Shown here one piece after another: positions 15,218 to 41,300 of a DNA stretch of 64,000 nucleotides. The stretch comes from Lepidodermella squamata (lineage: Eukaryota > Animalia > Gastrotricha), in NCBI GenBank assembly GCA_047495785.1, contig JBLDXI010000024.1, positions 2,728,001 to 2,792,000 of the forward strand, read 5' to 3'. Under the pieces are notes generated by a model that was not told the DNA's origin, made no database searches, and saw only the letters and a list, made by a program, of their open reading frames with translations. The stretch's first letter is position 1, and each line of letters starts with the position of its first letter. Both the position numbers and the translations under genes were made by a program.

Positions 15218-16588
15218 TCATTTACTTCTCAAATATATAGGCCGATAGTCACAATAACAAAGGTAATCGATTAACGGTTTAGGAATTTCAAGGCTATTAA
15301 CTTTTTCCGCGATATTAGGCGGGTTTACATTCATAATTATCGCACGCCTCGCTAGGCTTTGAAGACTCGGCAAATTTCTGGAAAAATAGTTACCCAGAAC
15401 AGTCAGCCAAGATGCAATAATTTGCGGCCGTCGCGATGCAAACTGGTATAAACCACGGCCGTCAGTCCTGGATAGATAACTCGGCTTTGAAAGCGATTCG
15501 ACGATTAATTCTAAGAAAAACGTCGGGCTACCCCAGATTTCACGGCAAATTTCCTCCTGATCCAAGTTCCAAACAGTCGAGGATTGGGCTAGCAGCCCTA
15601 AAACATCGGTAATCTCCGGAATTCTCGCCCCGTTCCGAAGAAGTGGTAAAATTCCATTTTGAACAAGTTGACCTAGTTTCCGGGACAGGTCAGTTGAAGT
15701 AAGCGTAACTTGCCAATTAATCGCATTAGCCATGACCTTTGTCAATAGAAAATTCATTTCAAATCCGAAACTTTCGACTTCAAGGATAGATTCAGCTTTA
15801 GCGAGAAGAAAATCAGCAGCTTCAGAACTCACAATCGCAACTTGGCTGAACCAATTTTCCAATAAAGCTGGGAAAGAAACCGATTCGGCGTTGAAATTCG
15901 TTGCCGAATAAATTTCTCTGAAAATCGACAACAAATTCTGAACTTCAGGTGAAGATTCTGGAACAAATCGGCGTGAAGCGAATCGGGTGAATTGGTCCAA
16001 TAAAACCAGGCAGGGCCGTGTCCTAGTTACAGGACAAAGGCCTTCAATTGGACTAACGCCATAATTCAAACATATTTCGACGCCTTCTCGAAATTGGAGG
16101 CATATAGTATGAAGTAATAGATGAGTCGTCAAGCAACTGGGTAATTCCTTTCCCGATAGGATTGATTTCAATAAATCGGGACTCTTCGTGAAAATCGCCA
16201 AATAAAGAAGTGCAAAAATTCTGTGATCGAAATTGTTCGCTGAAGGCAGGAAATTCTCGAAATTTTCGAATTCGACGCTCAATTCGGCTATTGTTAGGCC
16301 ACAAGTGCTTAGAATCGAGTCGAGTTGAGCTGATTCCAGTTGAGTTTGATTCGGGAGCTTCATATCACATCTCAGCCACGAATCGACCAAATCGGCAAGG
16401 TCATTGTTACTGCTCAGAATATTTCCTTGAATTTTAAATAAAATGTCCTCAATAGCTTCGATGACTTTTTCTTGGAAATTCGGTTCGTTTTTGACGAATT
16501 CGACTGTTTTGCATAGGCCATGGCATCGAAGCGAGCCGTGACCCTTCGCAAAATTTATAGGCCGTTCGCTTAATTCGAAAAGGGACAT
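15218..16588 (-). CDS. Intronless ankyrin-like repeat + C-terminal SOCS-box protein (ASB-like E3 adaptor)
   Basis: 456-aa ORF. SOCS box LPSLQSLARRAI..KVNSLEIPKPLIDYL, degenerate ankyrin segment LLLHTICLQFREGVEICLNYGVSP. Confidence 0.75.
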   Translation of the reverse strand: MSLFELSERPINFAKGHGSLRCHGLCKTVEFVKNEPNFQEKVIEAIEDILFKIQGNILSSNNDLADLVDSWLRCDMKLPNQTQLESAQLDSILSTCGLTIAELSVEFENFENFLPSANNFDHRIFALLYLAIFTKSPDLLKSILSGKELPSCLTTHLLLHTICLQFREGVEICLNYGVSPIEGLCPVTRTRPCLVLLDQFTRFASRRFVPESSPEVQNLLSIFREIYSATNFNAESVSFPALLENWFSQVAIVSSEAADFLLAKAESILEVESFGFEMNFLLTKVMANAINWQVTLTSTDLSRKLGQLVQNGILPLLRNGARIPEITDVLGLLAQSSTVWNLDQEEICREIWGSPTFFLELIVESLSKPSYLSRTDGRGLYQFASRRPQIIASWLTVLGNYFSRNLPSLQSLARRAIIMNVNPPNIAEKVNSLEIPKPLIDYLCYCDYRPIYLRSK

Positions 16589-16633: not shown

Positions 16634-17953
16634 TCAAATGTCAAGTTTAAACTCTTGAAAATTCAAATAATCACTGAGAAGTAAAGGTAGGCCTAAATCT
16701 TCAATAGCCTTCATTCTTTGATTGAGACCAATCGGCAATCGATTCACAATTATCGATCGAGCGATGTTTTGAAGCCGGCCATCAATAAACCGCCGCCGGG
16801 TCAAAATAGTACCGATCTCCGGGCCAGCCATATTAACCAGCTCGAACCCGGTCAAACCCGGACTAACCCGATGAACCCGGCTTGAAAAATCCAGCAACGC
16901 CTCGCTTAGGAAAACGATTAAAAACCCGGATTTCGGAGAAAAATCTGCGTGAAATTTTGAAATTGCCATAAATTCGCAACCAGGGCACGATTTCAAGCCG
17001 TCAATCCTTACGCCAGATTGAAGTAAGGGCAGGGTTAAGCTCGACATTAATTTAGCAGTTTCGGAGCCTGCTGATCGTTGAGGCAATCCAGTTGCTGTAA
17101 ATAGAAGCTTAAACATGGCCCATATTGCTTGCCATAACATTTTCCCAACGCGGCTTGGTTTCCGAAAATCGATCGATTGAAAGCGAATCGAGGCTGATTT
17201 TATCAAAAGCAGGCACGTTTCATTGCTAGCTTTCAGGGCAAAATTTCTCAATCGAGGGAAATCTACGAATAACTCCTCGAATTTAAATTTTTCCGCATCG
17301 ATTTTACCCAAAATTAGCCGAAAAATTGCCTCGGAATATTCATCATTTTCGCTCGAAGCCAGAATATCGAGACTGTGGGCCAAGGGCGTGAAAGAAAATT
17401 CGTTCGAGTACAGCGGATCGCATAACGGGGCTCCATTTTCCAGTAGAATTTCAACGCCTTGCAAAAATCGATTTTTTATCGATTGATACAATAAATGAGC
17501 CAGCATACAGCTTGGAATTTGACTTTTAACTTCTTTTAATGCCAGAATTTTCTTTAAAATTTCGTAATTACGACAAACAATGCAGAGATTGAGGCAAATC
17601 ATTGCTTCAGCGTCGTAATTTTCGACATTTTCCCGTGAAATTTCTAATAATTCTTGGGAAATTTCTTTAATCAGCGAGGCTGGCACTCTTCCCTTTGGAT
17701 AGTAGCCAATTAACAAGCCATTAGCTCCATTTGAAGAAATCACTTGCCGGTAAATTTCCGTAAAATTCGCGTGTAAAATGTCGCTGCCAACCAGATAAGA
17801 CCATTTAACGATATAGATTTGCCGATTGCTGTGCCGTTTTGTCAATTCGTGGGTCAAGTTGTCGGCCGATGTAATAAATTGGTCGTATAATTGCGGCGAG
17901 GTCGTGGTGTTGAAGGCGCATTTGCCCTGACATATCATATCAGCGTGAGCCAT
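16634..17953 (-). CDS. Intronless ankyrin-like repeat + SOCS-box protein, paralogue of the neighbour
   Basis: 439-aa ORF. SOCS box RLQNIARSII..IEDLGLPLLLSDYL. PSC..HLL..I..F.GVEI.L.G.P motif shared with 15218-16588. Confidence 0.75.
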   Translation of the reverse strand: MAHADMICQGKCAFNTTTSPQLYDQFITSADNLTHELTKRHSNRQIYIVKWSYLVGSDILHANFTEIYRQVISSNGANGLLIGYYPKGRVPASLIKEISQELLEISRENVENYDAEAMICLNLCIVCRNYEILKKILALKEVKSQIPSCMLAHLLYQSIKNRFLQGVEILLENGAPLCDPLYSNEFSFTPLAHSLDILASSENDEYSEAIFRLILGKIDAEKFKFEELFVDFPRLRNFALKASNETCLLLIKSASIRFQSIDFRKPSRVGKMLWQAIWAMFKLLFTATGLPQRSAGSETAKLMSSLTLPLLQSGVRIDGLKSCPGCEFMAISKFHADFSPKSGFLIVFLSEALLDFSSRVHRVSPGLTGFELVNMAGPEIGTILTRRRFIDGRLQNIARSIIVNRLPIGLNQRMKAIEDLGLPLLLSDYLNFQEFKLDI

Positions 17954-19701: not shown

Positions 19702-22700
19702 ATGGAAAAGGTAAATTTATCGGCGATTCTGCCAGCCTGAATTTGTGTGTAAATTTCAGTTGTTTCAAAAGGTTTTTCATCATCAAAAGTCGTCGTCCAA
19801 GAAGAAACACGATAAGCAACAGCACGAAAAGTTGGAAGAACAGCGACCCGAAAAGGCCGAACAAGAAACAACTGAAGTGCCGGTCGAGCAGAAAGAACAC
19901 GCCGTGCCGAGCGAAATTCCGATCGTCACCCAGACGACTGAGCCCGTTGTCCTGCCATTCGAAGTCCCGATTGCGATTCCGCCCCATCAGGTCAGTGGTA
20001 CTCAGCAAATCGAGCTCAATATGGGCCAGGTCTTGCAAGGCGCCTTAGCTGGTCAACCGATCGACCTTACGGCGCAAGGTCAAGCTCAAGAGGTGCCTGT
20101 CCACGTTGTAGAAGGTCGAACTGAAGGTGAAGCTGAGGGCGAGGTTCAGCTTGAAGGTCAAGAAGGTCGAATGGGCGGTCAAACCCAGCTTGAAGGTCGA
20201 GATCTCGAAGGTCAAGCTCAGGATGTGCCTGTCAACGTTGAAGAAGGTCAAATCGAAGGTCAAGGTCAAAGCGAGGCCGAGGTTCACCTTGAAGGTCAAG
20301 AAGGCCGAATGGGTGGTCAAATTCAGCTTGAAGGTCGAGATCTCGAAGGTCAAGCTCAGGATGTGCCTGTCAACGTTGAAGAAGGTCAAATCGAAGGTCA
20401 AGGTCAAAGCGAGGCCGAGGTCCACCTTGAAGGTCAAGAAGGCCGAATGGGTGGTCAAATTCAGCTTGAAGGTCGAGATCTCGAAGGTCAAGCTCAGGAT
20501 GTGCCTGTCAACGTTGAAGAAGGTCAAATCGAAGGTCAAGGTCAAAGCGAGGCCGAGGTCCACCTTGAAGGTCAAGAAGGCCGAATGGGCGGTCAAATTC
20601 AGCTTGAAGGTCAAGGTCTCGAAGGTCAAGGCCAAATTGGTGGAGAAAGCCGCCTAGAAGGTCAAGAAGGCCAATTGGCCGGCGAAGTCAAGCTTGAAGG
20701 TGAAGATCGGGTCACGGAGAAGCAAGAGCAGGAGGTGTGGGAGAAGCCGATGTCCTACGCTGAGGCCGTGACAAAGCCTGAAAAGCTGACGGAGGAAGGT
20801 CGCGGAATTGGGTTCGTAGGTGGCGAAAGGTCGCGAGGCCCGGGCGGTGATTTGACCGGCGGTCCGATGGAAGCCCAGCCGTCACTCATTGCGCAGCTGG
20901 AACCCGATGAGGAGGCGCCGTCAAGTTCGGGCGCGGTTAACCTGCCCCCGTCACCCCCAGCTGAGGAAGAGCGCGGTGGTCGCGGCGAGCTGATGGAGCA
21001 GCAACCAATGGCTGGCCCTGCGATCGAAATAGCTGGTCAAGAGGGTGAAGAAAGCGGCGTCGAAATGGGTGAAGAAGCCGGAGCTGAGCTGGACCAGCCT
21101 AGTGGCGGCATCGAGGCCGAAGAATTGGCGCCCCTTCAAGCCCTGTCGGCGGAGGACATGAAGCCGGGTCTCGAGTTCACGAAGGCGCCGGAAAATATCC
21201 CGGAGTACCATTCTACTCAGGAAGAACAACATAAATCGGAGCAGGGTGAGACAAAAGCCGGCCTCGATTTCTCCGAAGCACCCGAGCGTGACCAGGGTGT
21301 CCGAGCGGAGCAGCCCAAGCCTGAGGAACACCGCGAAGTCGAGGAGCAGCAGCAGCCGAAGACCGAGGAGTTGAAGCCTGACGATTTGCTGTTGACACAG
21401 AAGAAGGAAGAAGAACAGCCGAAGAAAGAGGAGCTGAAGCCTGAAGATTGGCTGTTGAAGCCGCAGAATGAAGGAGAGCAGCCGAAATCTGAAGAGCCGC
21501 AGCCTATGGAGATTGGCGGTGAGGAGCAGGTTGAGCTACAGCGCCAGCCCGCCTACGATGAAAGCAAGCTGGTTCCGCAGCTTCGACTCTTAGGCATGGC
21601 TGGAGCTAAGCGCGAAAGGTCCGAGGTCAAGTCCGATATTCCGGAGTCGAAGCCCGAAGGTTTGTGAATTTTTTGAATTTTTTTGAATTTTCTGAAATTT
21701 TCTATTTTTTGTAGAACACCGAGCTGAGAGGCGGGACATTACTTCACAGACTGAAATTGAAGGTGGCGAGCAACAGAAGTCAGGTTAGATTTGGTTTTAG
21801 CCAGTTTTATCATGTTTACTATTTTATTTTTTCAGAGGAAAATGTTACCTACGGCTACACTGAAGGCGTTGTTCCGCAGCTGCGGCTTGAAGGCGTTGGC
21901 GAAGAAAAAGGCGAGCAGAAAGGTTCGAAATTTCGAAGTTTTTTTTTATCAATTTCTCACATTGTTTTTTTTCAGAATCTCGCGGCCTGGAACATGGCAC
22001 TGAGGAGAGCAAGGTGCACATCGAATACAGCAAAGGTCGGCTTGGTCAAATAAATTTTAATCATTTTTTTTTAAATTTTGCTGTTGGCAGCTGAACAACC
22101 GTCTCGTGAGCAACAGAAAACGTATGGCTACGAAGAAGGTGTTGTTCCTCAATTGCGAGCTGAAGGCCACCTTGAATCTCACAGAGGTAACATTTAATTC
22201 AAATTTTTTTTCGTGATTTTTCGATTTTGTTATTTTATAATTTTGCTAAAAAATTGTGAATTTAAAATTGATGGGATTTTAAAGAATTCGTAATTATAAT
22301 TCAGAACTACCCCCGGGACCCACGGCTGAAGAACGAATGCGCCTGCAACGCGCTGCCTTTCTCATCGAATTCCCACTAGCTGGCAAGTTATTCAAATAAT
22401 TTCTGAAAATTAAGAAAAATTAGTAAAATCTCAAATTTTCGGTTTTTGTTAGTTTTTTATTTTTCAAAATATATTCTGAATTTTTCCTATTTTTTAGCCG
22501 AAGGTCTTGGCGAGGAGAAGCCCGAAGAACGCCATCGCGAAGAGAAGAAGAAGCCCGAAGAACGCCACCGTAAAGAGAAGAAGCCCGAGGAACATCGAGA
22601 AGAGCGAAAGCTTGAAGAGCATCGCGAGGAGAAAGAAGAAAAGCCGGCAGAACATCGCGAAGTCAGACCTCAAGGCGAGGCGAAAGCCGAAGAACCGCCA

Positions 22701-24162
22701 GCTGCTCACCGCGAACAAGTCCCGATTCACAGCGAAGAGCCTGAACGGCCGAGCATTCAACAGGTGATCGAACACCTAGCCGAAGCTAGTGGTCAAAAGC
22801 CGGAGGACATGACGAAACAAATTCACGAACGCGTTGTGACCGAACTCACCGAAGGCCTGCGCGAAATGCAGGTCACGCAAAGTGAGCAGGACGTCAAAAA
22901 GCTGACGCAGGTCACCCAAGAGGTCACCCAGGGCGCTGAGAAGAAAAAGGGTGACAAAATTTGCGTGGTCACGGGCGCTGCTTCTGGCCTCGGCTACTCA
23001 TGCGTCAAGTCGATTTTGAAGCTCCACAACGACTGGATTGTCTACCTGTGCGATCGTGATGAAAGGTCTGGGCAGGATGCGATTCGTAAGCTGAACGATG
23101 AGTCGCAACTCACGGCGCGTTTCCACCCGCTTGACCCAGATTCAATGGTGTCGCTGCGCAACCTGCGTGACACGCTGAAGCAAGAACACGGCAACGACTG
23201 CATCCAGGTTCTGATCAACAACGTCGGCAAGTTTATCGACGTCCGCGCTGAAGGCTCTGGCTCGAATGATTTCCGCTTCGATCAGGCGCGTTTTGAAGAA
23301 ACGATCCGGTCGAATTATTTCAGCACCCTGGCCGTTTGCCTGGAGCTTTTCCCGCTGTTAAGCGATGACGCCAAGGTCATTTTCATCTCGAGCCGCTTCG
23401 CCCAGGTCGCCTTCATGCACACCAACGAAGTCATGCAGCAACGCTTGCGATCTTGCTATCGGGTAAAATTTCTACAATTTTCTGAAAAAATTCAAAATTC
23501 CTAAAAATTCGGGTTTTTTTGGAATTTTTGAAAATTTGAACATGAATGAAAATTTTTTGAAATTTTTTAAAAATTTTAAAAATTTAATTAAAATTTGACT
23601 TTTATGAAATTTTGTCCATTTTATCCTAATTTTTGAAATGTTTTCAGATTTAATTAAGAATTTGCAATTGTTCCGAAATTTTTCAACATTATCGAAATTT
23701 AATTTTTTGATATTTTTCTGAATTTTTCTGAATTTGTTTAATTATTCCCGACATTTTTCTCAGGTCGAGCAAGTCAGTGAGTTGATGGAGCTGTTTGTCT
23801 CAAGCGATTTGAGCGCGATTCAAAGCGGCGCCGGTTGGCTCGCCGTTTCGCCAATGATGCAAATCTACAACCAGTACACGCTCGGCTCAATTTACCCATT
23901 CGGCATTGCTAAACTCGGCGTCAACCTGCTCGCCAATTGCTACCAGCACCAGTTCGACGACGAGAAGTCCTGCAAGCAGGTGCAGGTCAACGCGTGCTGC
24001 CCGGGCATGGAAAGCGGCAAATCCGCCGATGAAGCCGTTGATACGGTCATGTGGCTTGTCGAACAGCCGCCCGAGTCGTCGATCCGAGGCAAATTCGGAG
24101 CTGACCGTAAAATTCTCGACAATTTGGTCATTGACACCAGCGGCCATCAAAGCTTGTTCTGA
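19702..24162 (+). CDS. Long acidic/disordered repeat protein with C-terminal carbonyl-reductase-type SDR domain. Exons about 19702-19710, 19760-21659, 21715-21783, 21836-21922, 21977-22034, 22091-22186, 22305-22382, 22498-23462, 23764-24162
   Basis: Phase-compatible splice sites link the E/Q/G-rich ORF to an SDR with VVTGAASGLG, LINNVG, NYFST..C..LFPLL, ISS and VNACCPG (CBR1-like). Confidence 0.75.
20078..20630 (+). repeat. 138-bp (46-aa) coding tandem repeat, about 4 copies
   Basis: gatctcgaagg recurs at 20201, 20339 and 20477. Unit GQAQDVPVNVEEGQIEGQGQSEAEVHLEGQEGRMGGQIQLEGRDLE, built from gaaggtcaa subrepeats. Confidence 0.95.
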
Positions 24163-24315: not shown

Positions 24316-26174
24316 TTATTTTCCCACATTTTCGTAAATTTCGTGAATTTCTGATTTAATTTCGGAATTTTCCAAATTAGCGCAAATCCATTTCGGAAGA
24401 TTTTTCGAGTCAATAGTTGAGCTTTGGCTCGAGGTTAGGAAAACGTAGCTAACACTGCTGGATATTTGATTTTTGTCGGTAAAATTATCTTCAGGAACGC
24501 AAGTAGAGTCACCGCCATAGGTAAAGGAATTTTCAGAATACATGCCATTATCCGGAGTTTTTCTTGCAATAGTATAGGAAATTACTACAAAAAGAATGAT
24601 TATAGGATAGGTGATGAAGAATTCTAGGCCGATGTAGATGAAGAACGAGGCCAGCCAATGTAGGGACATTTCTTTTGACCAATTAATCGATAACGAATGG
24701 GTGACAATAGCGGAGCTAATTATCGTAATTGTTATAGCTGAAAGAAAAATTATAAAATTTCGAAAAAATTTGAAATTCGAAACTTACTTCCCCATATTAC
24801 AATAAGGCAAGCGATTCGATTATTTTTCCTCGGTGATCGATTCAGCCCATTTTTCGGTAAATTTCGATTAATTAATTTGAATATTGAGCTCTGAGTGCGG
24901 GAAATGGCCGCAACTAGGCCGCTGGCAATAAGTGGGTCAAGTAATAAAATATCGATGTCTAGATGTGGCGATGACTCATCATCGTCCGATGTCGAGTGCC
25001 CACTCGTGAGGAGACCCAAAATTAGGGCGGCTAGGAAAAAACTGACACCAACGCAGCCAAATCGTTCGAGTCGACTTTGAAAAGTTGGAAAAGGCTTCTG
25101 GAAAAATATTCAAGACATAATTGAATTATTCTCCAAAATAAAATAATTTCGAAATTTTTATGAACTTTTGAGAAATTTTCTAAACTAAGCATAACGTAAT
25201 ACTTACGAAAAGAATCGATATCCAAGGTAGCAAGTCCAGAATTCGATGTTTGAAATGATTGATGAGTAGGAATCGAACACTTTTCAACTTTTCCCTCTGG
25301 GCTACAACAGCTTGGACGGTAGAATTATCGAACAAAAATGCCTCAATTAGGAAGGGGTATATACAGCCTTTATCGAGGTCCATTATCAAAACCCGATCGA
25401 TGTAGAAAGAAACGAAATCGGATTCGATAGCCGGATCTAAGGTGAGTTCGATTTCGATGGCTTGAAGCTCGCCAATCGAAGTCGAGTTTGATATTAAAAT
25501 ATTTTCCAACCTTCTCGACGGGTGAAAATTCTATATTTTTTTCGATCAAATTCACCGAAATGTTGTTTCGAAGATGAAATTTTACCTTTCTAACACAATC
25601 ATCAAGCGATTTTCCCGGCGTAGATCCTCGGCTTCCTTTAAGCCTTATTTTCACTTTGATGAGGTTTCGATCGCTTTTTGCCACAATTTTCTCGTTTGAA
25701 AGCTTTGTTCGATAGTAGACAGATACGGCGAATTGAAATGCATCCGATTCTTCGTTTTCAAAGGCTGGTAGGAAGCGCCACTAAAATAAAAAAATTCATT
25801 TCAGCCCAAAGGTAATTGAAAACAAATTCAAAGAATTTTCGAACTTTTTCAGTGTCCCTGGCGTCGAAAAAAGCGCCGATTCGCATGCCCATAATGACGA
25901 AAACGAGCAAGCCGCCCAGAAACGTCAACACCAGCGTATTTTCAGTGTGAACGTGCGGCTCGATGAGGCCTTGATCGTCCGGCAATTGCGCTCGCTGCTC
26001 CTTATTGCCGTAAATGAGCATTGTCTCAAAATCAATGGCTAGCCGGTTCGATTTCGCAAAGTATACCGTGCTGTTGAGTACTACCATTTTCTCCTTAGTT
26101 CTCGACTCGTCATCATCAACCGCCATTGCTAATGTAATTGTCGAAATAAAGGTGAGAACCAAAAAATTGTTCAT
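24316..26174 (-). CDS. Truncated polycystin-1-like protein A: signal peptide-short stalk-TM1-PLAT-TM2 to TM5, multi-exon
   Basis: ENTLV-TM1-FDARD, then WRFLPAFEN..F.VSV, PLAT (IRLKGSRG..IGELQAIEI..FYIDRVLI.D..YPF), PWISI..SRLERFGC, and W...WL.S..I..P in TM4/5. These are PKD1-family landmarks. Confidence 0.7.
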
Positions 26175-26542
26175 GGCTTTTAGATTTCCAAAAAAATCAT
26201 AAAAGAGGCTCATAAAAACCAATACCAGGGGCGATTTTTTTCAAAGGAATTCGATACTTGGATTTATATTGCGAATTTATGATAATCGAATAAAAAAGAC
26301 ATTCAAGTAGCACTAATTCCGACCGGACTTCCGCATTTTGTTGTAGTGTACTACGATATTATAGGCAAAAAATATACGCACTGCCTTGGTAATTTTTTTT
26401 TATTTCAATCCTATATAATATTATCGGATTTCAAATATTTTTTATGCGTTCAATAATTGACCTAATTACTGTTATTAATCATAGAGGCCTCAATATAATT
26501 GAAAATCGTTCTACCAAATTTGGCCAGTGTCAAATAATTTTT

Positions 26543-28648
26543 CTAGCAGTAATCATCACAAGGTAGTTCGAGGCCACCACTTATGCTGTTCGAGCCGCTG
26601 ATATTATGCTCATCGCTATCAACAGGCGAATCGAGGCCCATTTCAGGTATCCTGAACAACAGCCGCGGTTGCGAGATGATCGGAATGCGGCTTTTTTGCA
26701 TGTATTTCAGCAGCTCATCCTCGCTCGCGTTGTAATCGTCCGGGTCGTAGGAGCCGTAAGCCATTTGACAGTTCGCGTTCATTCCGTCGTCCGGGCTATG
26801 GCGTGTGAAAGTCAGTATTAGGACTTGAGCTAGGATTAGGATTGGGTAAGTGATCGTAATATCGGCCAACAGGTAGACTAGCATTGATATCATCCAGTAA
26901 ATTGAAATATCGCGAGGCCATTCGATGGATATTAAATGAGCGGTAAAGCCGCATATCAAAACAGCCGACATGATGCCTAAAAATAATTGAAAAAAATTAA
27001 CTAACATTTCTAAAAAATTTAAAAATTTACTGAAGCTTCAACAAAAATTCACCAGCTATACAGGAATTTTGCAAAAATTACTAAAAAATTCAGGAATAAT
27101 TCTGGAATTTTTCAAAAATTTACAAAAATATTCAATAAAAATTCTGGAATTTTTCAAAAATTCAAAAAATCAAATTTACCTGTCCAAATACAACCAAGAA
27201 TGATTTTTCGCAGCTTCATATTGACATCCATTTTTTCGGTCGGAAATTTGCGATTTACGGCCTTGAAAGCGTAACTAAGAAGGCGGTTCAGAATTGCAGC
27301 CATAACGCTGGAAATGCTAGCTCCTTTCGCGAGCCAAATGCCAATTTCTAGCGCAGTGAAATCACTATCGCTCGAGAACGTATGTTCTTCAGTTTCGTCC
27401 ACTTCTTCCGCCTGTTCACCTTCTACAACTAGGACGTTGCAGAACAGTGATAGGATCAAGCTAGCAGCGAATAAGCTCAATCCTAGACAGGCCATTCGCT
27501 CCAATCTCGTCTGATAACTGGGATAAGGTTTCTAAAAATTGGAAAAATCAGAGAAAATCTTGAAAAAATAATAACTGCATTTTACGTGAATTATTGAGAT
27601 CCAAGGATACGAGTCGAGAATTTCGTTTTTCAAATGCCTTCGGAATAGTCCCGATATGGGCTTTAGCTGTTTCCTTAAGGCAAGACCTTTCACCATCTTG
27701 TGACATTCATGTAGCTGGGAATCAACCAAGAAAACCGACCTGCAAAATTAAAGATAAAAAACGAACAAAATCTTTACTCGCGAAACTTACACGCTCTCAT
27801 ATTTATTGTCCCTAATTAGGATGCGATCGATGTAGAGTGACACAAATTCCTGGAGCTGGCCTGATTTCGACACGGCGTGACTTTCATCAATTTTCAACAT
27901 AATTTCAATCGATTCCAAAGTCCCAATAGAATCACTGCAAGTCAGCAAAACATTTTCCAAGCGTCGACTCGGACCGAAATTCTGATAAAATATTTTTAAA
28001 TAAATTTTCAAAAATTCTAAAAAAATTACCTTTCGAACACAATCGTCCAGCAATCGCAGTTCTGTTTGCTTTAAAGTTCCAATGAGTCTGATGAATACTT
28101 TTATCAAATTCCCATCAGCGTCATTTTGCCAGTTTTTAACAACAGATTTGTAGTAAAAAGATACGTTATACCGGTAAGGATCGTCGTCGCAATTTTCCAA
28201 AACCGGCAAAAATTTCCACTGAAATTAATTAAATTGAAAAACGTTACTAAATTCATTTCAAAATTTAAAATTAAAATTTCAAAATTTTTAAAATTCATTA
28301 AAAATTTAAGTGCATTTTTTAAATATTTTTTAATACCTTGAGTTCATCTTCCGAGTCGAAAAATGCCGCAATTCGAGATCCGATGACAATGAATAAAAAC
28401 ATGCCGGATAAAGCTGCTAGTACAATGCTGTTTTCGTTGTGTTCGTGCGGCTCGAAGACCATTGTTTCAGCCGGCAATAAAGCTCGCTGTTCCCGCCTCG
28501 CATAGATCAGCATTGTCTCAAAATCAATCGCCAATCGCTGCGATTTCGCGAAATACATCGAGTTATTCAGCAGAATTGTCTTCTCGCCGTGGCTTTCAGT
28601 TGGACACGAGAAGAAAATCGAGAATATCACCGCGGCTAAAACTGCCAT
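26543..28648 (-). CDS. Truncated polycystin-1-like protein B, tandem paralogue
   Basis: Same order of motifs: YFAKSQRLAIDFETML, ENSIV-TM, WKFLPVLENCDDDPYRYNV, PLAT, PWISII, ERMACL, YWMISM..ITITYP. Confidence 0.7.
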
Positions 28649-29903
28649 TTCACTGTGAAATTTTAGAAAATATGCATTTTTTGTAAATATTTTTTGCGAT
28701 GAGAGGATAAAACAGACAATTTAGCAGCCAAATCTGCACTGGAACTTGCGAGTAATCGCGGCATATTAGGCGAATCGTAGCCGAGTCAATGAGGCGTAAA
28801 ATTCCGGGTATTATTTCACTAGTGAGAAAAAATACTATAATCTGCCCACAATTTTTCAAGGGTTTGGTCTAGATGAGACAATTTAATGGCAATATCGCAG
28901 AGTTTTTACAAGGGCTTTATAGATAAGTGATAGCAAATAAAATCGCTAAATAAATAATGCCATCGCACCGCATTAACCTTTCAGTTCAACATCGATTTTT
29001 TCGGGGGAAAAATATTTTAAGGGGGATTAAAAAATATTGCAGACAAAAAAATTCCTGAAGTAAGGGCCGAACGCCAGAAGTAAACAATGCACTAATGAAA
29101 AATCAGGCGAAACTAATTCGAATTATACTCGCCTGATTTTGCCTCTCGTTGGCTCTGAAAAATGCATCATAGCTCTCTGGTAAGAATATAGATTGTCTCC
29201 GCTTCAATTAATGACGTATAAAAATACTTTCCATCTCGGCATCGCAAATATTTTGATTTTTCATGCTGATCACGGACTCGTCACTGCTTGCCTTTTATGG
29301 AGAGGGCAAAATTATACTTTTTTTGTATCGGGAATTTATTTAAAAAAACTGGGACATAAATAAGACGTCCTAGATCGATCGATAATTTAATAAACTCAAT
29401 TCTAATTTTTTTATTGTAAAAGTACTTTTAGTCGTCCCCTGGCGCCAGTCGATAGTCAATTCCCTCGTGTTGTTGAAAATTTGATAAAAAGTTCGTTTTT
29501 TCATCATTCTTAATTGCATTACAGGATTCAATCTATACTTTTATTGTGCAACTAAGGTTAAAAACCGGAAGAAGAATCTGGGATAAGGGATATGTCAATG
29601 TTGTTCGATGACGAGAAACAGACTTGAAAATAATTAGTTCACAATTATCGTCAGCCATCATCGACTGAGGGACGACACATAGCAAGTATCAAAATGTGGG
29701 CGATATTCGATGAAAAGCACTATATTTGTATTCAGTAACCATAACATAGTATGTCTATCCTATTCAATCAGCCTAATTCAAACCAACGTTTCGATCTTTC
29801 AATTCCTTTAATCTAATGATGAAACCTATATCGGCGGGTTAAAAGTCAGGAAAATTTCAGGCGTAAGGATAAGTCGCGTAAAGCTTGTATATCGTCCTGA
29901 AAG

Positions 29904-32900
29904 ATGAGGACGACGGCTTTATACTACTTAATAGCGGCGTTTATTTCGCTAAATGGCTCATCAGCTCTGATTTCGAAGGTGAAAACTCTTAAAATATTAG
30001 CCCTGGTTACCAAAACTGGCGCCGAGCCAAAAGATGGCACATCATGCTTTGCAGGGATACAGGTAAAAATATTGTCCAAAACTAGGTCAACTCAGCCAAT
30101 ACGCTTTTTAAGGTCGCCGTTGATGAGGCGAACTCAAGACAGGATATTCTAGCTGATTACAGAGTCGAGGTGGTACCGGCTGATGAAGGCTTCAACGCAG
30201 TTTTGGCCCCAAAATCAGTGTTAGATTTCATGTTTGAGTCGAAATTCGATAACTCGACTTTCATCGCGCCTATTGTTCTCGGCAGTCAATTCCAGTGCCA
30301 AACTTCGGCACGAATTATTCGCGAATTCGGAATGTCCCAAATCTCGATCGGATGTAACGGCCGAGCTTTGGTCAATCGGGCAAATTACCCGAATTTATTC
30401 AGAACAATGGCAGTGGCTGATCAGTTCGCAATGATGGGCATTTTAATGGCTAAATCTATTGGGAAATGGCGGCAGTTTGGCATTCTGTCCTACTCAGGCA
30501 ATCCTATAGTAGCCGCGTCGGCGTTTCAGATGTATGAACTGGCGACTAGGGAAGGTATTGAGGTTCGATGGTTTTCAAATGTGCCCGAAATCGATGATAA
30601 TGTGGTTCTATCGATGAAGAACAGCGATGTTCGAATATTTTACAACGCCATGTCAGAAGTCGCGAATGTTGTGAAATTTCTATGCTTGGCTCATAAGCAT
30701 TCACTCACAATCCCAAGGTAAAAAATTCAAATAAGGAGTTGGATAAAATAAACATAAAATTAAGCTTAAACTAAACAAAATATTTTGTAGAGAACCAAAT
30801 TTGGCACCTAATAAAAATAGAATATTAGAATTTTCTAAAACTCCTTATAACAAATTGGGACGGTCCGCAAGAAAAGCAATAAAACCCAATAAAACAATGG
30901 TGCATCGATTCACAATTGAAAAACCATTGTTTGGGGCCTCCTTAAAAAAATCGTACAAATAATTTTATTGCTTATTTTCTTGCGGGCGGTCTGAAATGTA
31001 TAAAGCCGCAATTTGAAAGTGATCATGCGGCGCCCTAATAGTGAAAATTTGTCATTTAAAATTGTAAGCTTAATATCGATAAGTCACTGATAACGCATTT
31101 ATACCTATTGTGTGGACTCATCTCCGCCCCCGCTCCCCCAACTCGATTTCCACTCGACTGCGTCCCCGATTTCCCAATTTTCGATTTCATTCCGAGAAGC
31201 AGTAACTTCTGTAATCGTAAAATAATCGAATTGATCCTCTGTAAAATTGACATTTTTCATGCCAAAATCTGACTTAACCTAAATATCGATTAATTAGGCT
31301 CGGGGTTCTGATCATAATTCCGCTTAGATTGTAAAATTAACGAGTGAAATTCATAATTTCGGATAGAGCCAATATATAGGCCCATTTAGCTTTCAATTTA
31401 ATTTGCACATATACTTTTTGTTGTGTGTGTATCACCATTCACCATCATTAAATTTTCTCCAATTTTGCAGGTATCTCCACATCATCAATCGAGCGACCCA
31501 TGTTGACCCGGAAACACAACAGCTGAATCTACCTTTTGGCTGTACTAAAGAAATGATTCGCGAGATGCAAATGTCTATAATTTGGGTTGGCTTCTTTTCG
31601 CCCATCGAAAACTACGGCGCGTCAACTTTCGGCTACGACATGACCGAATTCGATAGACGATTTCTGAATCTTACTAATGGGAAAATTCCTCCGGATTTCG
31701 AACTTCGATATTTCTGCCACGATATGGCTATGCAGGCTCTTCTAGCTATGAACAACACTGAACGCGAAATTCGAGCGCAAAACTTGACCTTGAGTGATTT
31801 TACCGATAATCGAAAATCGATCGGTCACGTGATCACGCAATCGATCGCAGAATCGAATTTCACCGGTCTCCGGCTGGGGAGATTCACCTATTCCAAACGA
31901 TTGGAAATGGATTCGGAGCCAATGTATGCCCTTCAATGGACCCCTGAAGCCGGTCTAAGGCCATTCGCTGCCTTCACCTGGACAGGCCAAAGTGAAGCTG
32001 AACTGTTCAATTCCAGCTTTCATAGGATGACAATCATTCGGCCAGCTATTTGGTATTCGAGGGTCGGCAACAACCCGCCGAAAGATCTGTCGGATCTACT
32101 TCAAATTGAAGCGAAATTTCCGAAATTCCTTTTTCCAATTATCACAAGTCTTTCTGGTTTATTATCGATTGTGCAGTTCACGCTTGCTCTTTACAAGATC
32201 AGTCTCAGAGAAACGAAGATTGACTTGATATTTGACCTGATATTTGCCATGGGCAGCATTATGTTCAATGGCTCATCAGTTTTATGGATCCACCCGGATT
32301 TCGGAGGTCCAAGCAGCATTTTATGCACACTTCGCCAATTTTGGTTCGTAATAGGGGTCACAAGCTTCAATTCAGTCCTAATAAGTAAATCTTACCTCCA
32401 GTTTTGTATCTACAAAAACTTAAGGCGGATCTCGAAAACGCGCGAGAGACGGCGCAGGAGATTGACTAGAAATTCCTCGAATTATATGGCACCTCCATTT
32501 TTCGTTATACGGAAAGCTCTTTTAGTCACCCTAGGCCTTATATTAGGTCACGTGGGGATTTGGACGATTTTTCGCTTGATTGACCCAGTTACCGTGGATA
32601 AGTCCAGGTCAGCCGTTCTCTACGACGAAGCTCTGGATAATTACTACCAAGTTACAACTGAATTTTGCCGATCCAACCAGTTGTCATGGCTCGCAATCTT
32701 GGCTCTCGGCCAAGTGTTGCTGCTTTTCACAGCGTCTTGCTTCTGCCTGCAAACTCGGCACGCCAGGTTTCGGCGCAAAAATCGGCTGATTTCAGCCAAA
32801 TGGCGGGCTGTTCATCTAGCGACCTGGAACTCGACGCCGTGCTTATTGCTAACAGCTTTTGTCATTTTCGTCATGCCGTTGAGGCTGTTGGTCGCTCGCG

Positions 32901-32983
32901 GTGTTGTACTTGCGTTATCACAACTTATTTACTCGTTAGCTTCATCAATTTTGTATAATTCTTGGAAATTCACCAAGATATGA
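29904..32983 (+). CDS. Class C GPCR, GABA-B-like (Venus flytrap + 7TM), copy 1. Exons 29904-30062, 30113-30717, 31471-32983
   Basis: Signal peptide, VFT (AVDEAN, QISIG, R.NYPNLFRT), seven hydrophobic helices with C..R.FW..G..SK in TM3, DP, EFC.S and WL.IL..LLL..QTR. No cysteine-rich domain. Confidence 0.85.
30858..30991. repeat. Short imperfect inverted-repeat element in GPCR copy 1 intron 2
   Basis: gacggtccgcaagaaaagcaataaaa / ttttattgcttattttcttgcgggcggtc. Confidence 0.5.
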
Positions 32984-34494: not shown

Positions 34495-35254
34495 TAATTG
34501 TGGAAGTTCATTTGCATATTCATCGTGCGCGCGGAAAAAAGTGTCATGTCCGCAAAACGACTTCGAGATAATTCTGACTTTGAAAATTGCTCCATATTGG
34601 AATTAGGTACCAGTAAACGTTGTCTTTGTTGCTCTTTCGAGTGGCGCTATCCGTTTCTGCGTAGCATTTTTAGTTTTTGCGCTACAGTAAAAAATAGGCA
34701 TAGCACACTTTTTGCGAGAAGACATGGTTTGCGGGCGGCTCCGGTTCGATTCCCCGAGGCCACCTTATTTTCGCTGCTCGTATTTATATTTTTTATTTTT
34801 TATTTTTTATTTTCTCATTTTGGAGATTGGTTAGCCGATTTGCATAGTTTTAGCTTTTAGCTCATTTGTTAAGTTCCAAGTCTGTTCACGAATAAAGGGT
34901 CATTGCAAAATATGGTCGCCGATAATAATGCGTTTATTTCTTTATATGGACTTCGTTCGATAAAACAACGTCCCCAGTAGAAATAGCCCTTTTCATACCT
35001 GAGGAATTATGGAACCGGGATTTCAGCTAATTATTGTAGATGAGTAGATTGCGAATCCGTCGAAAGTCACTTTCGGCTGCTTAAGTAGCACTTTTTCCGC
35101 CCGCACGACGGTCCGATTTCAAGCTGATGACAGTTGATGCAGCTTTCGTCACTGTTTTCATCTAATTAGGTAAAGCGACTCAGTTTGCCGCCGTCGCGAG
35201 TTTCAGAGAGACATTAATTCATGAATGTGTATCTTTGAGATTGCATTTAAAAAA

Positions 35255-37722
35255 ATGAGTACGGGCTATTTCACCCTCGCGTTTTTTGTGATTATACATG
35301 CTATTGACGGCTCGAAACAGCTTAGCAAAGCGAAGACTATCAAAATGTTAGCCCTGGTAACAAAAACTGGCGCCGATCCTAAAGATGGTACGTCATGCAT
35401 TGCGGGAATACAGGTAAAACAATATTGTCCAAAACTAGGTCAACCGAACCGATATATTTTTGAAGGTTGCTATTGATGAGGCGAACTCTAGGCAGGAATT
35501 TCTAGCCGATTATAGAGTCGAAGTGGTGCCGGCTGATGAAGGCTTCAACGCAGCTTTGGCCCCGAAATCAGTCGTCGATTTTATTTTCGAGCCGAAATTC
35601 GATAACACGAGTTTCATCGCGCCTATTGTACTCGGCAGTCAATACCAGTGCCAAACTTCGGCACGAATTATCCGCGAATTCGGAATGTCCCAAATCTCGA
35701 TCGGGTGTAACGGCCGAGCTTTGGTCAACCGGGCAAATTACCCGAATTTATTTCGAACAGGCGCCGTTGCTGACCAAGTCGCAATGACGGGCGTTATGAT
35801 CGCTAAATTCATCGGAAATTGGCGGCAATTGGGCATTTTATCGTATTCTGGCAATCCTATTGCATCAGCTTCGGCATTCCAGTTGTACGAAACAGCGGCT
35901 AAGGAGGGCATCGCGGTTCGATGGTTCTCATACGCGCCCGAAATCGATGAACCATTGATTTTATCAATGAAGCAAAGCGATGCTCGCATTTTTATCATCG
36001 CTGTATCAGAAGTTCACAAAGTGGTTGAATTTCTATGCTTGGCTCATAAATTTTCGCTATCTCTACCCAGGTAAGAGGTGAAAACAGAAAAAATTTAAGA
36101 ATTCAAAATAAAAAACTCCTCCTTAAAGATTTTTTGAATTATTTTTCGCCCGCTGAATTTTGAAATTTTTAAGCTTAATTTCAAAATATTTGTGTAGGTA
36201 CCTTCATCTCATCCCTCGTGTAGCCTATGTTGATCCTGATACCCAGAAGCTTAACCTACCGCATGGCTGCAATCGTGTCATCTTACGAGAAATTCAAAAA
36301 TCGGTTATTTGGGGCGGCCCTTTTTCACCAGTTGAAAACTACGGCGCGTCAACTTTTGGCTACGACATGACCGAATTCGATAGGCGATTCCTTGATCAAA
36401 CTGGCGGAGAAATTCCTGCCGATTACGAACTTCGCTATGCCTGCCACGATATGGCTATGCAGGCTCTTCTAGCTATGGATAAAACTGAAGGCGAAATTCG
36501 AGCGCGAAACTTGACCTTGAGTGATTTTGCCGATAATCGAAAATCGATCGGTGGCGTGATCACGCAATCGATCGCGGGGTCGAATTTTAAATCTCTTCGA
36601 TTTGGCGATTTCTCATATTCTAGGCGATTACTAGAAATGGATTCAGAACCAATGTATGCCCTTCAATGGACGCCAGAGGATGGATTAAGGCCTTTTGCTG
36701 CCTTCACCTGGAAAGGCACAAATGAAGCTGACCTGTTCAATTCCACCCTTTACAACGTGACGATCATCAGACCACCCAAATGGTATTCCACTGTCGGCAA
36801 CCGCCCGCCGAAAGATCTATCAAATCTGCTTCAGATTCAAGTCGAATTTCCGACAATCACCTTTCCGGCAATAACCGCTCTAGCTGTGGCAATTTCGATT
36901 CTGCATGTAACACTTACGTTGCGCGGGGTCAAATTAGGGAGATCTAAGACTGACTTGGCCTTCGATGGAATTCTAACGATCGGCAGCATCTTGTTCAATG
37001 TTTCATCAGTTTTGTGGACCGATCCATTTTACAACGGTCCAAATGCCTTGGCCTGCACTATTCGCCAATTGTTAATTGTAACAGGCGTTACAGGTGTGAA
37101 CGCAGTTTTGATCAGCAAGTCCTATCTGCAACTTCAAAGTTACAATAAATTAAGCCCGAAATCGCGCCAGCGAGCTGGTAAAAAATCTCCAAAATTCTTG
37201 GCCCCATCTGATTCGGTGATGAGGAAAGCTCTCTTAGCCACGCTGAGCCTGATAATCGGCCACGTGGTGATTTGGGCGATTTTCCGCATGGTTGATCCGT
37301 TGACATTGGAAGTTTCAAGTTCACCGGTGATCTTCGACGAAGCTCTTGATAATTACTACAAATTAACGACAACAATTTGCCGATCAAATCATCAGCTAGC
37401 GTGGTTAGCAATTTTGGCTCTGGGCCAAGTTACTTTGCTATTCGCAGCGTCCTGCTTCGGGTTCAGGAGTCGGAATTATTCTAAAATTCGATTGCGTTGC
37501 GATAGAAATAACCTGATTTCAGCCGAATGGCGGGCAGTTCGATTAGCGACCTGGAACTCAACGGCTTGCTTTTTGCTGACGGCTTTTGTCATTTTCGTAA
37601 TGCCTCAAAGGCTACTTGTGGCTCGGCGTATTGTCATCGCGCTAGTGCAACTTATCTACTCTGTAACCTCGTCAATGTTGTACAATTCGTGGACATTTTT
37701 GGACATTTTTTCTTCTAAATAA
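35255..37722 (+). CDS. Class C GPCR, GABA-B-like, copy 2. Exons 35255-35413, 35466-36070, 36198-37722
   Basis: Paralogue of 29904-32983 with identical intron positions. Confidence 0.85.
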
Positions 37723-38319: not shown

Positions 38320-41300
38320 TTATTCAGCAGGGATTTCAGTTTCTTCATCATCAGGTTTCTTATGGTTATCAGCCTCGGCGCTGGAAACAACAATAACAGC
38401 GCTCTCCTCGTTTCCGTCAAGAATAGCGCATAGCAATTTGCCGTAGTCACCCGAGTCCATTTGAAGGATGGCCTTATTGAGAGTCGGCGCACCTCCGGTC
38501 AAATCGCTATAGTAATCGATGACATTCTGCAAATCGCATTCGCTCCTTGAGATCAAAATATGATTAATCCCAGCTTTCTGCTTTGTCTTCAGCAGTGCGG
38601 AAAGTCTTGACGCTAAATACTTCCATTTGTCAATGATAGCCGAAACTATAGGAAGAAATATTAGTCACACTTAGGAGCTAGAAACTCAATTAAGCTGACC
38701 TGCAGTGATGAAAGCATTCTGAATCGCTGGCTTTTCAAATGCATCTTTCGCATTCGGCAACAGCTGGTTTGTCAAGTCTTCATCGGGGTATTCGACTTGG
38801 TATGTCGAGCAAATATGCCGGAAGTGGGTGTGGCCTCGAGTCTTGAACATTTCTAGCAATAAATCCTGCCCAGGTGTTCCATGCAGCCTGTCTGCGTCAA
38901 TTTTCAAATGATTCGCACTGAGCTGCTCCGGCGTTTGAGGTCTCAGTAGTTGAGAAACCAAAAGCTGGACAAAAGCTGGCTCATTCTTGTCCAGTACAGC
39001 TTTCAAGTTATCCTCGAGCGTTTCCTTGAAAACTGAAATGCAAAAATTAGAGGTCAAATGTAAACATTTATAAATTTACTGCGGCTGTATTCAGCCTCAA
39101 TCTCCTGCAGCCGTTCGTAAGACTCGGTGAAAAATATGTCGATATAGGCTTCATAGTCCAAATTTGGCTTCTTTTCCTCAAGTAACGCTTTAATTCTTCG
39201 AGCGGTAATTTCCTGATGAGGCTTCATTAACGTTTTCAGAACCAATTGGAAATCTCCAGAAGTATTTTTCTCCAGGTCTTTGTCGTAATCCTATAGAAAG
39301 AGATGAATAACATTCCTTCATTACAGTGAAAAAACTTGCCCGTTTCTTGTAAATGTCATTGTAGGCACTTCTAATGTCAGATCGCAACTTTTGAGATCTG
39401 GTAGAGAATAAACTGGTCAGAGCTGCTCGATTTGTCCTGAAACTCGTCAGGGCGCAGTTTATTGCCATAGCATCAGGTTTCGGGTCGTAGCTGCCCTGGT
39501 GGTGGAATATTGCTGGAACAGCTCGAATCGATCTGTCTGGAATAACGATATCCTGTAGACGCTTGTGTTCAGCCGCCGCAGCCTCGGCAATTTCTTTCCG
39601 TCTTTCCTTCTCCATTTTCTTCTTCTGCTCTTGCTTCTCGGCTCGTTTCATGAATTGCTTTATCGTAGTCACCTTCCTTGTCTTGTTGAGATCGACTAGA
39701 GTTATGAGTATGTTCAGGGTCATTTGATCATCGCTAAACTGACGTTGTAGGGCGTCGGATAGAGCGTCCTCCTCGTTACTGCCGACCATTTCCGCAAATT
39801 CTTCAACAATATTGCCGAAGTAGGCGGAGTCGCATTGCAAGGTGATTATTCGGATGATTGAGTCCTTGCGATTCAAGGCGAATCCTCTTTGCAGGGCGCG
39901 TGCAAAATGCTTTGGAGGGTCTTCTATAGCTTCAACTAAATACTTGTTAGGATCAGCTAAATTACAAGTTTCTGTGAACTTACTGACATCGAGCAGTGGT
40001 TTTTGAACGCCAGGATCTTCAAAATACTCCGCAACATTTTGTTTCGCTTCGACGGAAAATTCTCGTCTATAATAGTCAAAGACGTCCTTGAGATGCGGAT
40101 TATCTCGAACTTTGAATAGCGAACAAATGAAATGATCCTCTGGCTGAAGTTGTTTCTTTGTCCTCAGCTTTTTCCCGATTTCTTCGTTGGTCTTCAGTTC
40201 TTCGAACAATGCTCGGGCATCTAGTTTTGCTGCGTTTATTGATGATCCTTTTGGAGCCTTAGGTCTTGCAGATAATGAAGTGAGCAGATGACGTAGGAAT
40301 GGTTCGGTTTCCATCGCAACGGCTATGTTCTTCTCAAGAGAGAAATTGTTCCCTGCAAAATGATTCTGTAAACCAAATCGAAAAGATGGTTCCCCTTACA
40401 TTTTCTGTACAAATCTCTCGCCCGAAACAGCTCGTCATAAGGCTCTGTAACAATCACATCGAATAAGCATTCCGAGTCTACAGGAACCAGCTTCATGGCG
40501 TCATTTAAATCGTTGGCCAGATTGATCGACCTAGGTTTAGCCAGTCTAGCGAGGATTGTTCCAGCCAGATCAGGATACGCTTCATCAATAGCAGCGTGAA
40601 GCTCTCGTTTATGGTTGCGCTTGTAATCCTCAGCCATTTCCAACCTCTGTTGGTATCGTTTTCGAACTAGAACGCGGACGATTTTCGATAAATCAGCTTT
40701 GAGCTTAACAATTCTCTCAACTTCCATTTCCTCTGCAGTTAGAAAACGCTCATCTTGAGGGTCTTGAGTAGCTTCCATCATAGCTTCTTCATCGCCAGCA
40801 TCTGGTTCGTCCGATTCGGGATATGGAAAAGGAACCCTTGGTGCTTTAGGATATCCGTCTATTCATTGGAAATAGAAGATCATCGGTTAAAGGTGTTTGA
40901 GGTCAACGTTACATTCAGCGATTTCTGGGAAGAGTCGGCAATATAAGCGATGGCTGAGATCCGGGTAAACCATAGCATCGCCCGTCACAGTGAATCCCGC
41001 CACTCCACTTTCGTTCAGAGGTTCCAGAACAACATAGCCTTCTTGCCGATTTCGGCGAACCCAAAACTCGCTACGGCGCCCTCCATCGCCGGCACAATCC
41101 CAAACACCGTTGTCGACCTGCAGGAAGTAACCTGGGAACATCACGGATTCAAACTTTCTTATGTTTTGTTCGGCGACTTTGTGGACACGGAAAAAGCACC
41201 GAGGGCTAAAGCAGGAGATATTAGGATTTGAATTTAAATCAAAATTTGCAGCTCACTCGTCCCTTTTTCCAGCGGCGGAAATCGTAAATTCATTCTCGAC

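Follow-up and report, generated by a model that had tools for sequence, protein, structure and literature searches.

The window analyzed here, a stretch of 64,000 nucleotides of the gastrotrich Lepidodermella squamata (GenBank assembly GCA_047495785.1, contig JBLDXI010000024.1, positions 2,728,001 to 2,792,000 of the forward strand), holds at 24316-28648 two tandem genes, called A and B hereafter, which lie in the same orientation on the minus strand. Each encodes a predicted membrane protein whose layout recalls the N-terminal membrane part of polycystin-1 (PC1, the PKD1 product), with neither the ectodomain nor the channel half of that family. We describe the genes, their boundaries and the tests of this likeness; all positions are those of the window.

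Two intact paralogous genes

Both open reading frames (ORFs) are complete and bounded by canonical splice sites at the coordinates given by an earlier sequence-only reading of this DNA, which had proposed two tandem genes. The splice sites and frames of the two coding sequences were read from the sequence and checked by script.

26543..28648, minus strand: gene B coding sequence, six exons (28648-28337, 28218-28030, 27981-27791, 27739-27586, 27531-27180 and 26976-26543, all minus strand), 1632 nt, 543 aa
24316..26174, minus strand: gene A coding sequence, five exons (26174-25845, 25780-25586, 25530-25207, 25097-24788 and 24737-24316, all minus strand), 1581 nt, 526 aa

A second possible ATG of gene A lies at 26213. 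All introns of both genes are GT..AG and 48-203 nt long, the host genome being of the small-intron animal type, and their positions are common to A and B save for one additional intron in B. In tblastn within the window, each A exon matched its B counterpart and no other sequence (E 1e-13 to 1e-31), with amino acid identities of 34-61% per exon, and a third copy in the window was rejected on the same searches. A and B are paralogous, intact genes.

The anatomy described by the sequence-only reading, namely, a signal peptide (SP), a conserved outer segment, a first transmembrane helix (TM1), TM2 to TM5 and a stop, is present in both proteins, the signal peptide by hydropathy. The features are as follows.

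28586..28648, minus strand: gene B, signal-peptide-like N terminus, probably about residues 1-21, with a hydrophobic window at 1-19 and small residues at -3/-1
26121..26174, minus strand: gene A, signal-peptide-like N terminus, probably about residues 1-18 and ending in A-M-A, from hydropathy
28502..28555, minus strand: gene B, conserved outer motif YFAKSQRLAIDFETMLIY, from the paralogue alignment, with an N-x-S sequon before it
26010..26063, minus strand: gene A, conserved outer motif YFAKSNRLAIDFETMLIY, from the paralogue alignment, with an N-S-T sequon before it
28358..28429, minus strand: gene B, TM1, about residues 74-97, Kyte-Doolittle 2.21, with EPHxHxEN just before it
25866..25937, minus strand: gene A, TM1, about residues 80-103, Kyte-Doolittle 2.29
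27712..28176, minus strand: gene B, beta-rich, PLAT-like cytosolic domain (exons 2-4), from the strand pattern in low-confidence AlphaFold2 (AF2) models
25330..25738, minus strand: gene A, beta-rich, PLAT-like cytosolic domain (exons 2-3), from an ESM Atlas feature search of exon 3
27180..27531, minus strand: gene B exon 5, with KPYPSYQTRLER, TM2, an acidic outer loop, TM3 and a basic inner loop
24788..25097, minus strand: gene A exon 4, with KPFPTFQSRLER, TM2, an acidic outer loop, TM3 and a basic inner loop
26543..26976, minus strand: gene B exon 6, with TM4, a short outer loop, TM5 (ITYPILIL), RHSPDDGM, an acidic, Ser-rich tail of ~80 aa and the stop
24316..24737, minus strand: gene A exon 5, with TM4, a short outer loop, TM5 (ITYPIIIL), RKTPDNGM, a tail of ~80 aa and the stop

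The best-conserved part of the two proteins is the 18-mer YFAKSxRLAIDFETMLIY (YFAKS[QN]RLAIDFETMLIY), extracellular by predicted topology and invariant between A and B at 17 of its 18 positions, and the N-x-S/T sequon just N-terminal to it occupies the same alignment column in both. It is followed by ~25 less conserved residues, the last of which are EPHxHxEN, and then by TM1. Counted from the 18-mer, the stretch up to TM1 comprises ~43 residues (25 in PC1), and the mature outer segment before TM1 would measure ~50 aa. The loop after TM1 comprises ~200 residues, mostly beta by prediction, then a linker with PWISI at its end; the consensus KP[FY]P[ST][FY]Q[ST]RLER stands directly before TM2 in both proteins. 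TM4 and TM5 are separated by an outer loop of 12 residues, and the TM5 consensus ITYPI[IL]IL is followed by [RK][KH][TS]PD[ND]GM and by the tail of ~80 residues, which is poorly conserved between A and B. The short acidic tail attributed to both genes holds for B, whereas the tail of A is only weakly acidic and Ser-rich.

Kyte-Doolittle windows give TM1 and four further helices, with acidic outer and basic inner loops. Hydropathy and loop charges thus predict five helices in an N-out/C-in topology with the beta-rich domain on the cytosolic side. Intron 2 of gene B (27982-28029) is 48 nt long, in frame and without a stop, and its retention would add 16 hydrophobic residues to the PLAT-like domain; in an AF2 model of the exon 2-intron 2-exon 3 read-through, the intron-encoded insert was modelled as a long helix.

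Expression, boundaries and selection

Two sequencing runs bear on the locus: X2 represents this stretch as DNA, and X1, which carries another organism label, is RNA-like, with contigs at this locus that are mostly 95-99% or at least 99% alike. The X1 contigs span gene B and jump exactly over the introns 27532-27585 and 26977-27179 (CT..AC when read on the plus strand). These contigs show that gene B is transcribed and its RNA spliced. At its 5' end, an X1 contig runs unspliced and colinear with the genome to 28695, 47 nt upstream of the ATG; the reading frame is closed by a stop 25 codons ahead of the ATG, and the intervening 25 nt (28696-28720) hold no AG acceptor. B can thus gain no coding exon from upstream by splicing, nor can its ORF be extended in that direction. 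For gene B, this excludes the splicing to upstream GAIN exons that the sequence-only reading had named as a refuting outcome. The 1.25 kb upstream of B shows no stop-free stretch of more than 72 aa and no GPS-like motif, and, since neither the exons nor the intergenic DNA upstream contain a C-x-C-x-HL[TS]-like motif, an upstream GPS remnant was rejected.

The genes lie close together, with 369 bp from the B stop to the A ATG and 154 bp between the stop codons of A and of a convergent adh_short gene, spacings that agree with those from which the sequence-only reading saw no room for channel exons. Both flanks are occupied by plus-strand genes, adh_short (short-chain dehydrogenase) downstream of A and ANF_receptor/7tm_3 upstream of B. 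Downstream channel exons were rejected, since no PKD_channel ORF lies there and the convergent adh_short gene comes next; the Pfam PKD_channel family is absent from the A and B exons and from the larger window ORFs scanned. With the B 5' end closed by RNA, stop and missing acceptor, and with plus-strand genes on both sides, A and B stand as genes of their own with neither ectodomain nor channel part, as first read.

The adh_short gene itself (22446-24162, plus strand) is expressed in X1, its exon 1 encodes a long KE-rich repeat of PEEHR type, and its 3' end reaches to ~35 nt from the gene A stop codon. Class-C G-protein-coupled receptor (GPCR)-like tandem genes with ANF_receptor and 7tm_3 Pfam domains lie at 29904-32983, 35225-37722 and 45654-47246 on the plus strand, two closely similar copies being directly upstream of gene B on the opposite strand.

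It could be argued that A and B are parts of a larger transcription unit, joined by long-range or trans-splicing to distant ectodomain or channel exons, or by read-through from B into A. Gene A has almost no X1 RNA cover, a point that also counts against our own view of A as a functional gene; AG dinucleotides occur between its upstream stop and its ATG, and only two of the five B introns are among the spliced joints listed. Nevertheless, B is closed by a stop codon of its own, X1 contigs give out near 26458-26654 and leave the B-A spacer uncovered, and the B 5' end is continuous genomic sequence beyond any usable acceptor. Together with the plus-strand genes on both flanks, one of them expressed, the upstream 1.25 kb free of GPS-like motifs and long stop-free stretches, and the window free of PKD_channel ORFs, these findings make such a unit very unlikely.

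Selection was assessed from strain or haplotype differences. In exons 2-3 of gene B, all 14 differences are synonymous (13 taken singly, and the pair in codon 160 jointly Leu -> Leu). Gene B is under purifying selection. In the signal-peptide stretch of gene A, four haplotype differences are non-synonymous and two are synonymous; signal peptides often carry non-synonymous differences of this kind. Between A and B, pS is 0.82, which is saturated, and pN is 0.36. The dN/dS ratio of the paralogues is not computable because synonymous sites are saturated, and these values indicate that the duplication is old and that both copies have been kept intact.

The same data bear on the idea that A and B are decaying, functionless fragments of a partly duplicated PKD1-like gene. 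Such a fate would suit the truncated architecture and the near silence of gene A in the one RNA-like run; it is hard to reconcile with ORFs intact over five to six exons despite saturated synonymous divergence, with the wholly synonymous polymorphism of B exons 2-3 and with the splicing and expression of gene B, and we regard it as extremely improbable.

Run X2 also reveals a second haplotype, ~10% divergent, with indels and unalignable parts in B intron 1 and the 5' flank. At the sites 28255-28300, 28674-28695 and 26514-26530, the X1 RNA contigs match this second form.

Likeness to the polycystin-1 family

The N-terminal domain (NTD) of the PKD1 family consists of TM1 to TM5 (PMC8357825), and its PLAT domain, placed after the first TM, is intracellular in every case (PMC1934368). 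The order found in A and B, with SP, short outer segment, TM1, beta-rich cytosolic domain and TM2 to TM5, is the order of this NTD (PMC8357825, PMC1934368), in agreement with the sequence-only reading, and both proteins have its five predicted helices with N-out/C-in topology. The likeness to the NTD of PC1, PKD1L1-3, PKDREJ, LOV-1 and SpREJ3/4 comprises the outer juxtamembrane segment, TM1, the cytosolic beta-rich domain, two helical hairpins and the cytosolic C terminus, as well as a basic-PD-acidic motif after TM5. Unlike these family members, A and B have no GAIN/GPS, REJ, PKD repeats, lectin modules or other ectodomain (no Pfam GPS match was obtained in either), and they stop ~80 aa after TM5, without the TM6-11/TOP channel half and the PC1-type C-tail.

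Kinship to polycystin-1 is not yet proven; it is suggested by the layout and spacing of the parts, by their topology, by two short motifs and by a language-model lead to PLAT. The distances between TM1, the domain and TM2 presumably equal those of PC1, and PWISI...RLER..C before TM2 presumably resembles the polycystin pattern W-x-S...R-x-Q-R-x-x-CC, both being leads only. As to the second motif, we take KRLHPDEDD of human PC1 to stand directly after TM5 as well. The post-TM5 sequences RKTPDNGM and RHSPDDGM of A and B resemble this 3633-KRLHPDEDD (PMC3172256).

The domain after TM1 was labelled PLAT by the sequence-only reading. Its likeness to PLAT/LH2 (PF01477) lies in its size, its all-beta prediction and a V-x-[IL]-R-L-x-G-x-x-G signature in register in A and B; it differs in that A and B fall below the gathering score and leave the Pfam profile without a match. 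The window offers its own comparison in a PLAT-PLAT-annexin gene (38320-43285, minus strand), with two canonical PLAT domains and annexin repeats: the Pfam PLAT model recognises these canonical domains (E 9e-22), not the A and B loops. With hhalign, the exon-2 profile fell in the correct register on a canonical PLAT domain of this neighbouring gene, at its strand 2 and G..G loop, with P of only 0.05-0.09. In the ESM Atlas, the ten best family-bearing matches of A exon 3 are all PLAT clusters (0.87-0.89, 170-178 shared features), at a recognition value under the tool's comfort line. Since the Pfam and PDB profiles are blank and the ESM Atlas provides the only lead to PLAT clusters, we use the term PLAT-like, the PLAT label itself being unconfirmed.

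Several results weigh against the kinship. The homology searches were made exon by exon, which is a weak design, and the word search was limited to proteins of a length near that of the query; no search gave statistically significant similarity to PKD1-family proteins or to PLAT. Pfam, including PF01477, returned no match at E<=10 for the 11 exon translations and the stop-free read-through of B exon 2-intron 2-exon 3, and PDB profile searches, for which the read-through and the exon profiles A1-A4 and A6 served as queries, gave chance rows only, in a library that includes PC1 and PKD1L3. An exhaustive HMMER search with the exon-1 profile found none among 1.84 billion representatives, and the word search with the exon-3 profile and the metagenome locus scans with the exon-1 and TM2-3 profiles were blank. 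Hhalign probabilities for the exon profiles were ~1% or less, and Smith-Waterman scores against the canonical PLAT domains of the window itself were not above those of shuffles. AF2 on two exon-level pieces reached a pLDDT of 46-47, and Foldseek and VIA-align returned noise on these low-confidence models. Hence, the homology to PKD1, to PLAT or to a post-GPS stalk put forward by the sequence-only reading finds no backing in the sequence searches or in the unusable exon-level folds, and the structural check proposed for it, run with Foldseek on exon-level models, yielded only noise. The ESM Atlas had no usable match for the TM2-TM3 exon. Word searches that took as query a canonical PLAT domain or the entire PLAT-PLAT ORF of the 38320-43285 gene found no relative in the protein collection.

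With every homology search blank, the main rival is a lineage-specific orphan family: A and B would be five-helix membrane glycoproteins with a beta-rich cytosolic loop, unrelated to polycystins, and the likeness of layout would be coincidence or convergence. The missing ESM match of the TM2-TM3 exon and the shuffle-level similarity to canonical PLAT fit this explanation; the ESM Atlas, however, leads independently to PLAT, and the exon-wise searches are weak by design. Moreover, to our knowledge, a beta-rich cytosolic domain of ~120 aa placed ~20 residues past the first TM of a multi-pass protein is otherwise confined to the PKD1 family. We consider an orphan family possible, although somewhat unlikely.

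Elsewhere in the window, the block 20001-22000 is the sole GC-rich one (GC 0.535, GC skew +0.19, AT skew +0.17) and holds a 640-aa ORF without a Pfam family (19745-21667, plus strand). A single-exon ORF of 456 aa at 15218-16588 (minus strand) ends in a SOCS box and is adjoined by a 439-aa ORF at 16634-17953 without a Pfam family.

A proposed stand-alone membrane module

Loss of the channel half is tolerated in the PKD1 family, as illustrated by sea urchin SpREJ1 and SpREJ2, channel-less members with one or two TMs that keep the ectodomain (PMC1934368). While these two retain a large REJ/GPS/lectin ectodomain and have lost the membrane part, A and B are the reverse, and we found in the literature consulted no PKD1-family member lacking both ectodomain and channel. 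The NTD can also be parted from the channel half: the C-terminal domain (CTD) of PKD1L3, alone with PKD2L1, retains channel function (PMC8357825). A laboratory analogue of A and B exists in the CD5-SP-stalk-CTF construct made for the PC1 tethered agonist, which joins a signal peptide, the stalk and the C-terminal fragment (CTF) (bioRxiv 10.1101/2021.08.20.457171) and likewise lets the signal peptide run straight into a short juxtamembrane stretch followed by TM1.

The comparison with the stalk goes no further in sequence or in mechanism. The outer segment before TM1 measures ~50 aa in A and B compared with 25 aa for the PC1 stalk, and the 18-mer bears no convincing similarity to the PC1 stalk TAFGASLFVPPSHVRFVFPEP (PMC12513491). 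In adhesion GPCRs and PC1, the tethered agonist is the beta-13 strand of GAIN, exposed by cleavage and bound by a receptor core (the 7TM bundle or, in PC1, the TOP domain), and A and B have no GAIN, TOP or 7TM. The PC1 stalk acts via TOP domain, pore loop and the G-protein motif of the C-tail (PMC9171645), none of which A and B possess, unlike the PC1 CTF; a cis tethered-agonist mechanism of the known type is thus excluded. The suggestion that a pre-cleaved stalk lies exposed and works as it does in PC1 is therefore unsupported (PMC9171645). A split polycystin, of which these genes would encode one half, is likewise unsupported, the window showing no gene that could complement them. The 18-mer may rather serve as a binding surface, possibly in trans.

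We propose that the tandem genes A and B, duplicated long ago and both functional, encode a stand-alone membrane module derived from the PKD1-family NTD, which would act as an accessory or scaffold subunit; this is the most likely of the readings considered, although we see about as much reason to accept it as to doubt it. The module would begin with the outer segment next to the membrane and TM1, continue with a PLAT-like beta-sandwich in the cytosol and close with TM2 to TM5. It may have arisen by partial duplication of a PKD1-like gene, with a new signal peptide at the site of the former GAIN/GPS ectodomain and an end of the gene before the TRP-like channel half. Because S1-S6 are absent, the protein is unable to join a channel pore, and it would most probably serve as a membrane scaffold in an accessory or regulatory role, with a PLAT-like loop that could bind lipid or protein partners at the cytosolic face. 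On the outer side, the invariant 18-mer, probably glycosylated at the predicted sequon, may bind the short outer loops of its own protein or, in trans, the outer domains of polycystin-type complexes.

A rather doubtful extension of this model would make A and B a natural NTD-only polycystin, long kept as an expressed stand-alone pair, in which the juxtamembrane stalk of the ancestral receptor survives as the 18-mer, now always exposed and active in trans. If true, it would show an autonomous function of the N-terminal membrane domain of polycystin-1. The TM1-TM5/PLAT half of PC1 carries disease mutations. Its function is poorly understood, and channel activity survives its loss (PMC8357825). 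Should the kinship fail, A and B would represent an expressed, conserved orphan family of membrane glycoproteins from a poorly sampled animal lineage, of modest interest. If, on the other hand, a selected NTD-only gene is confirmed, the module works alone, and the family would gain a small, tractable protein of ~530 aa, compared with >4000, for studies of expression, localisation and structure.

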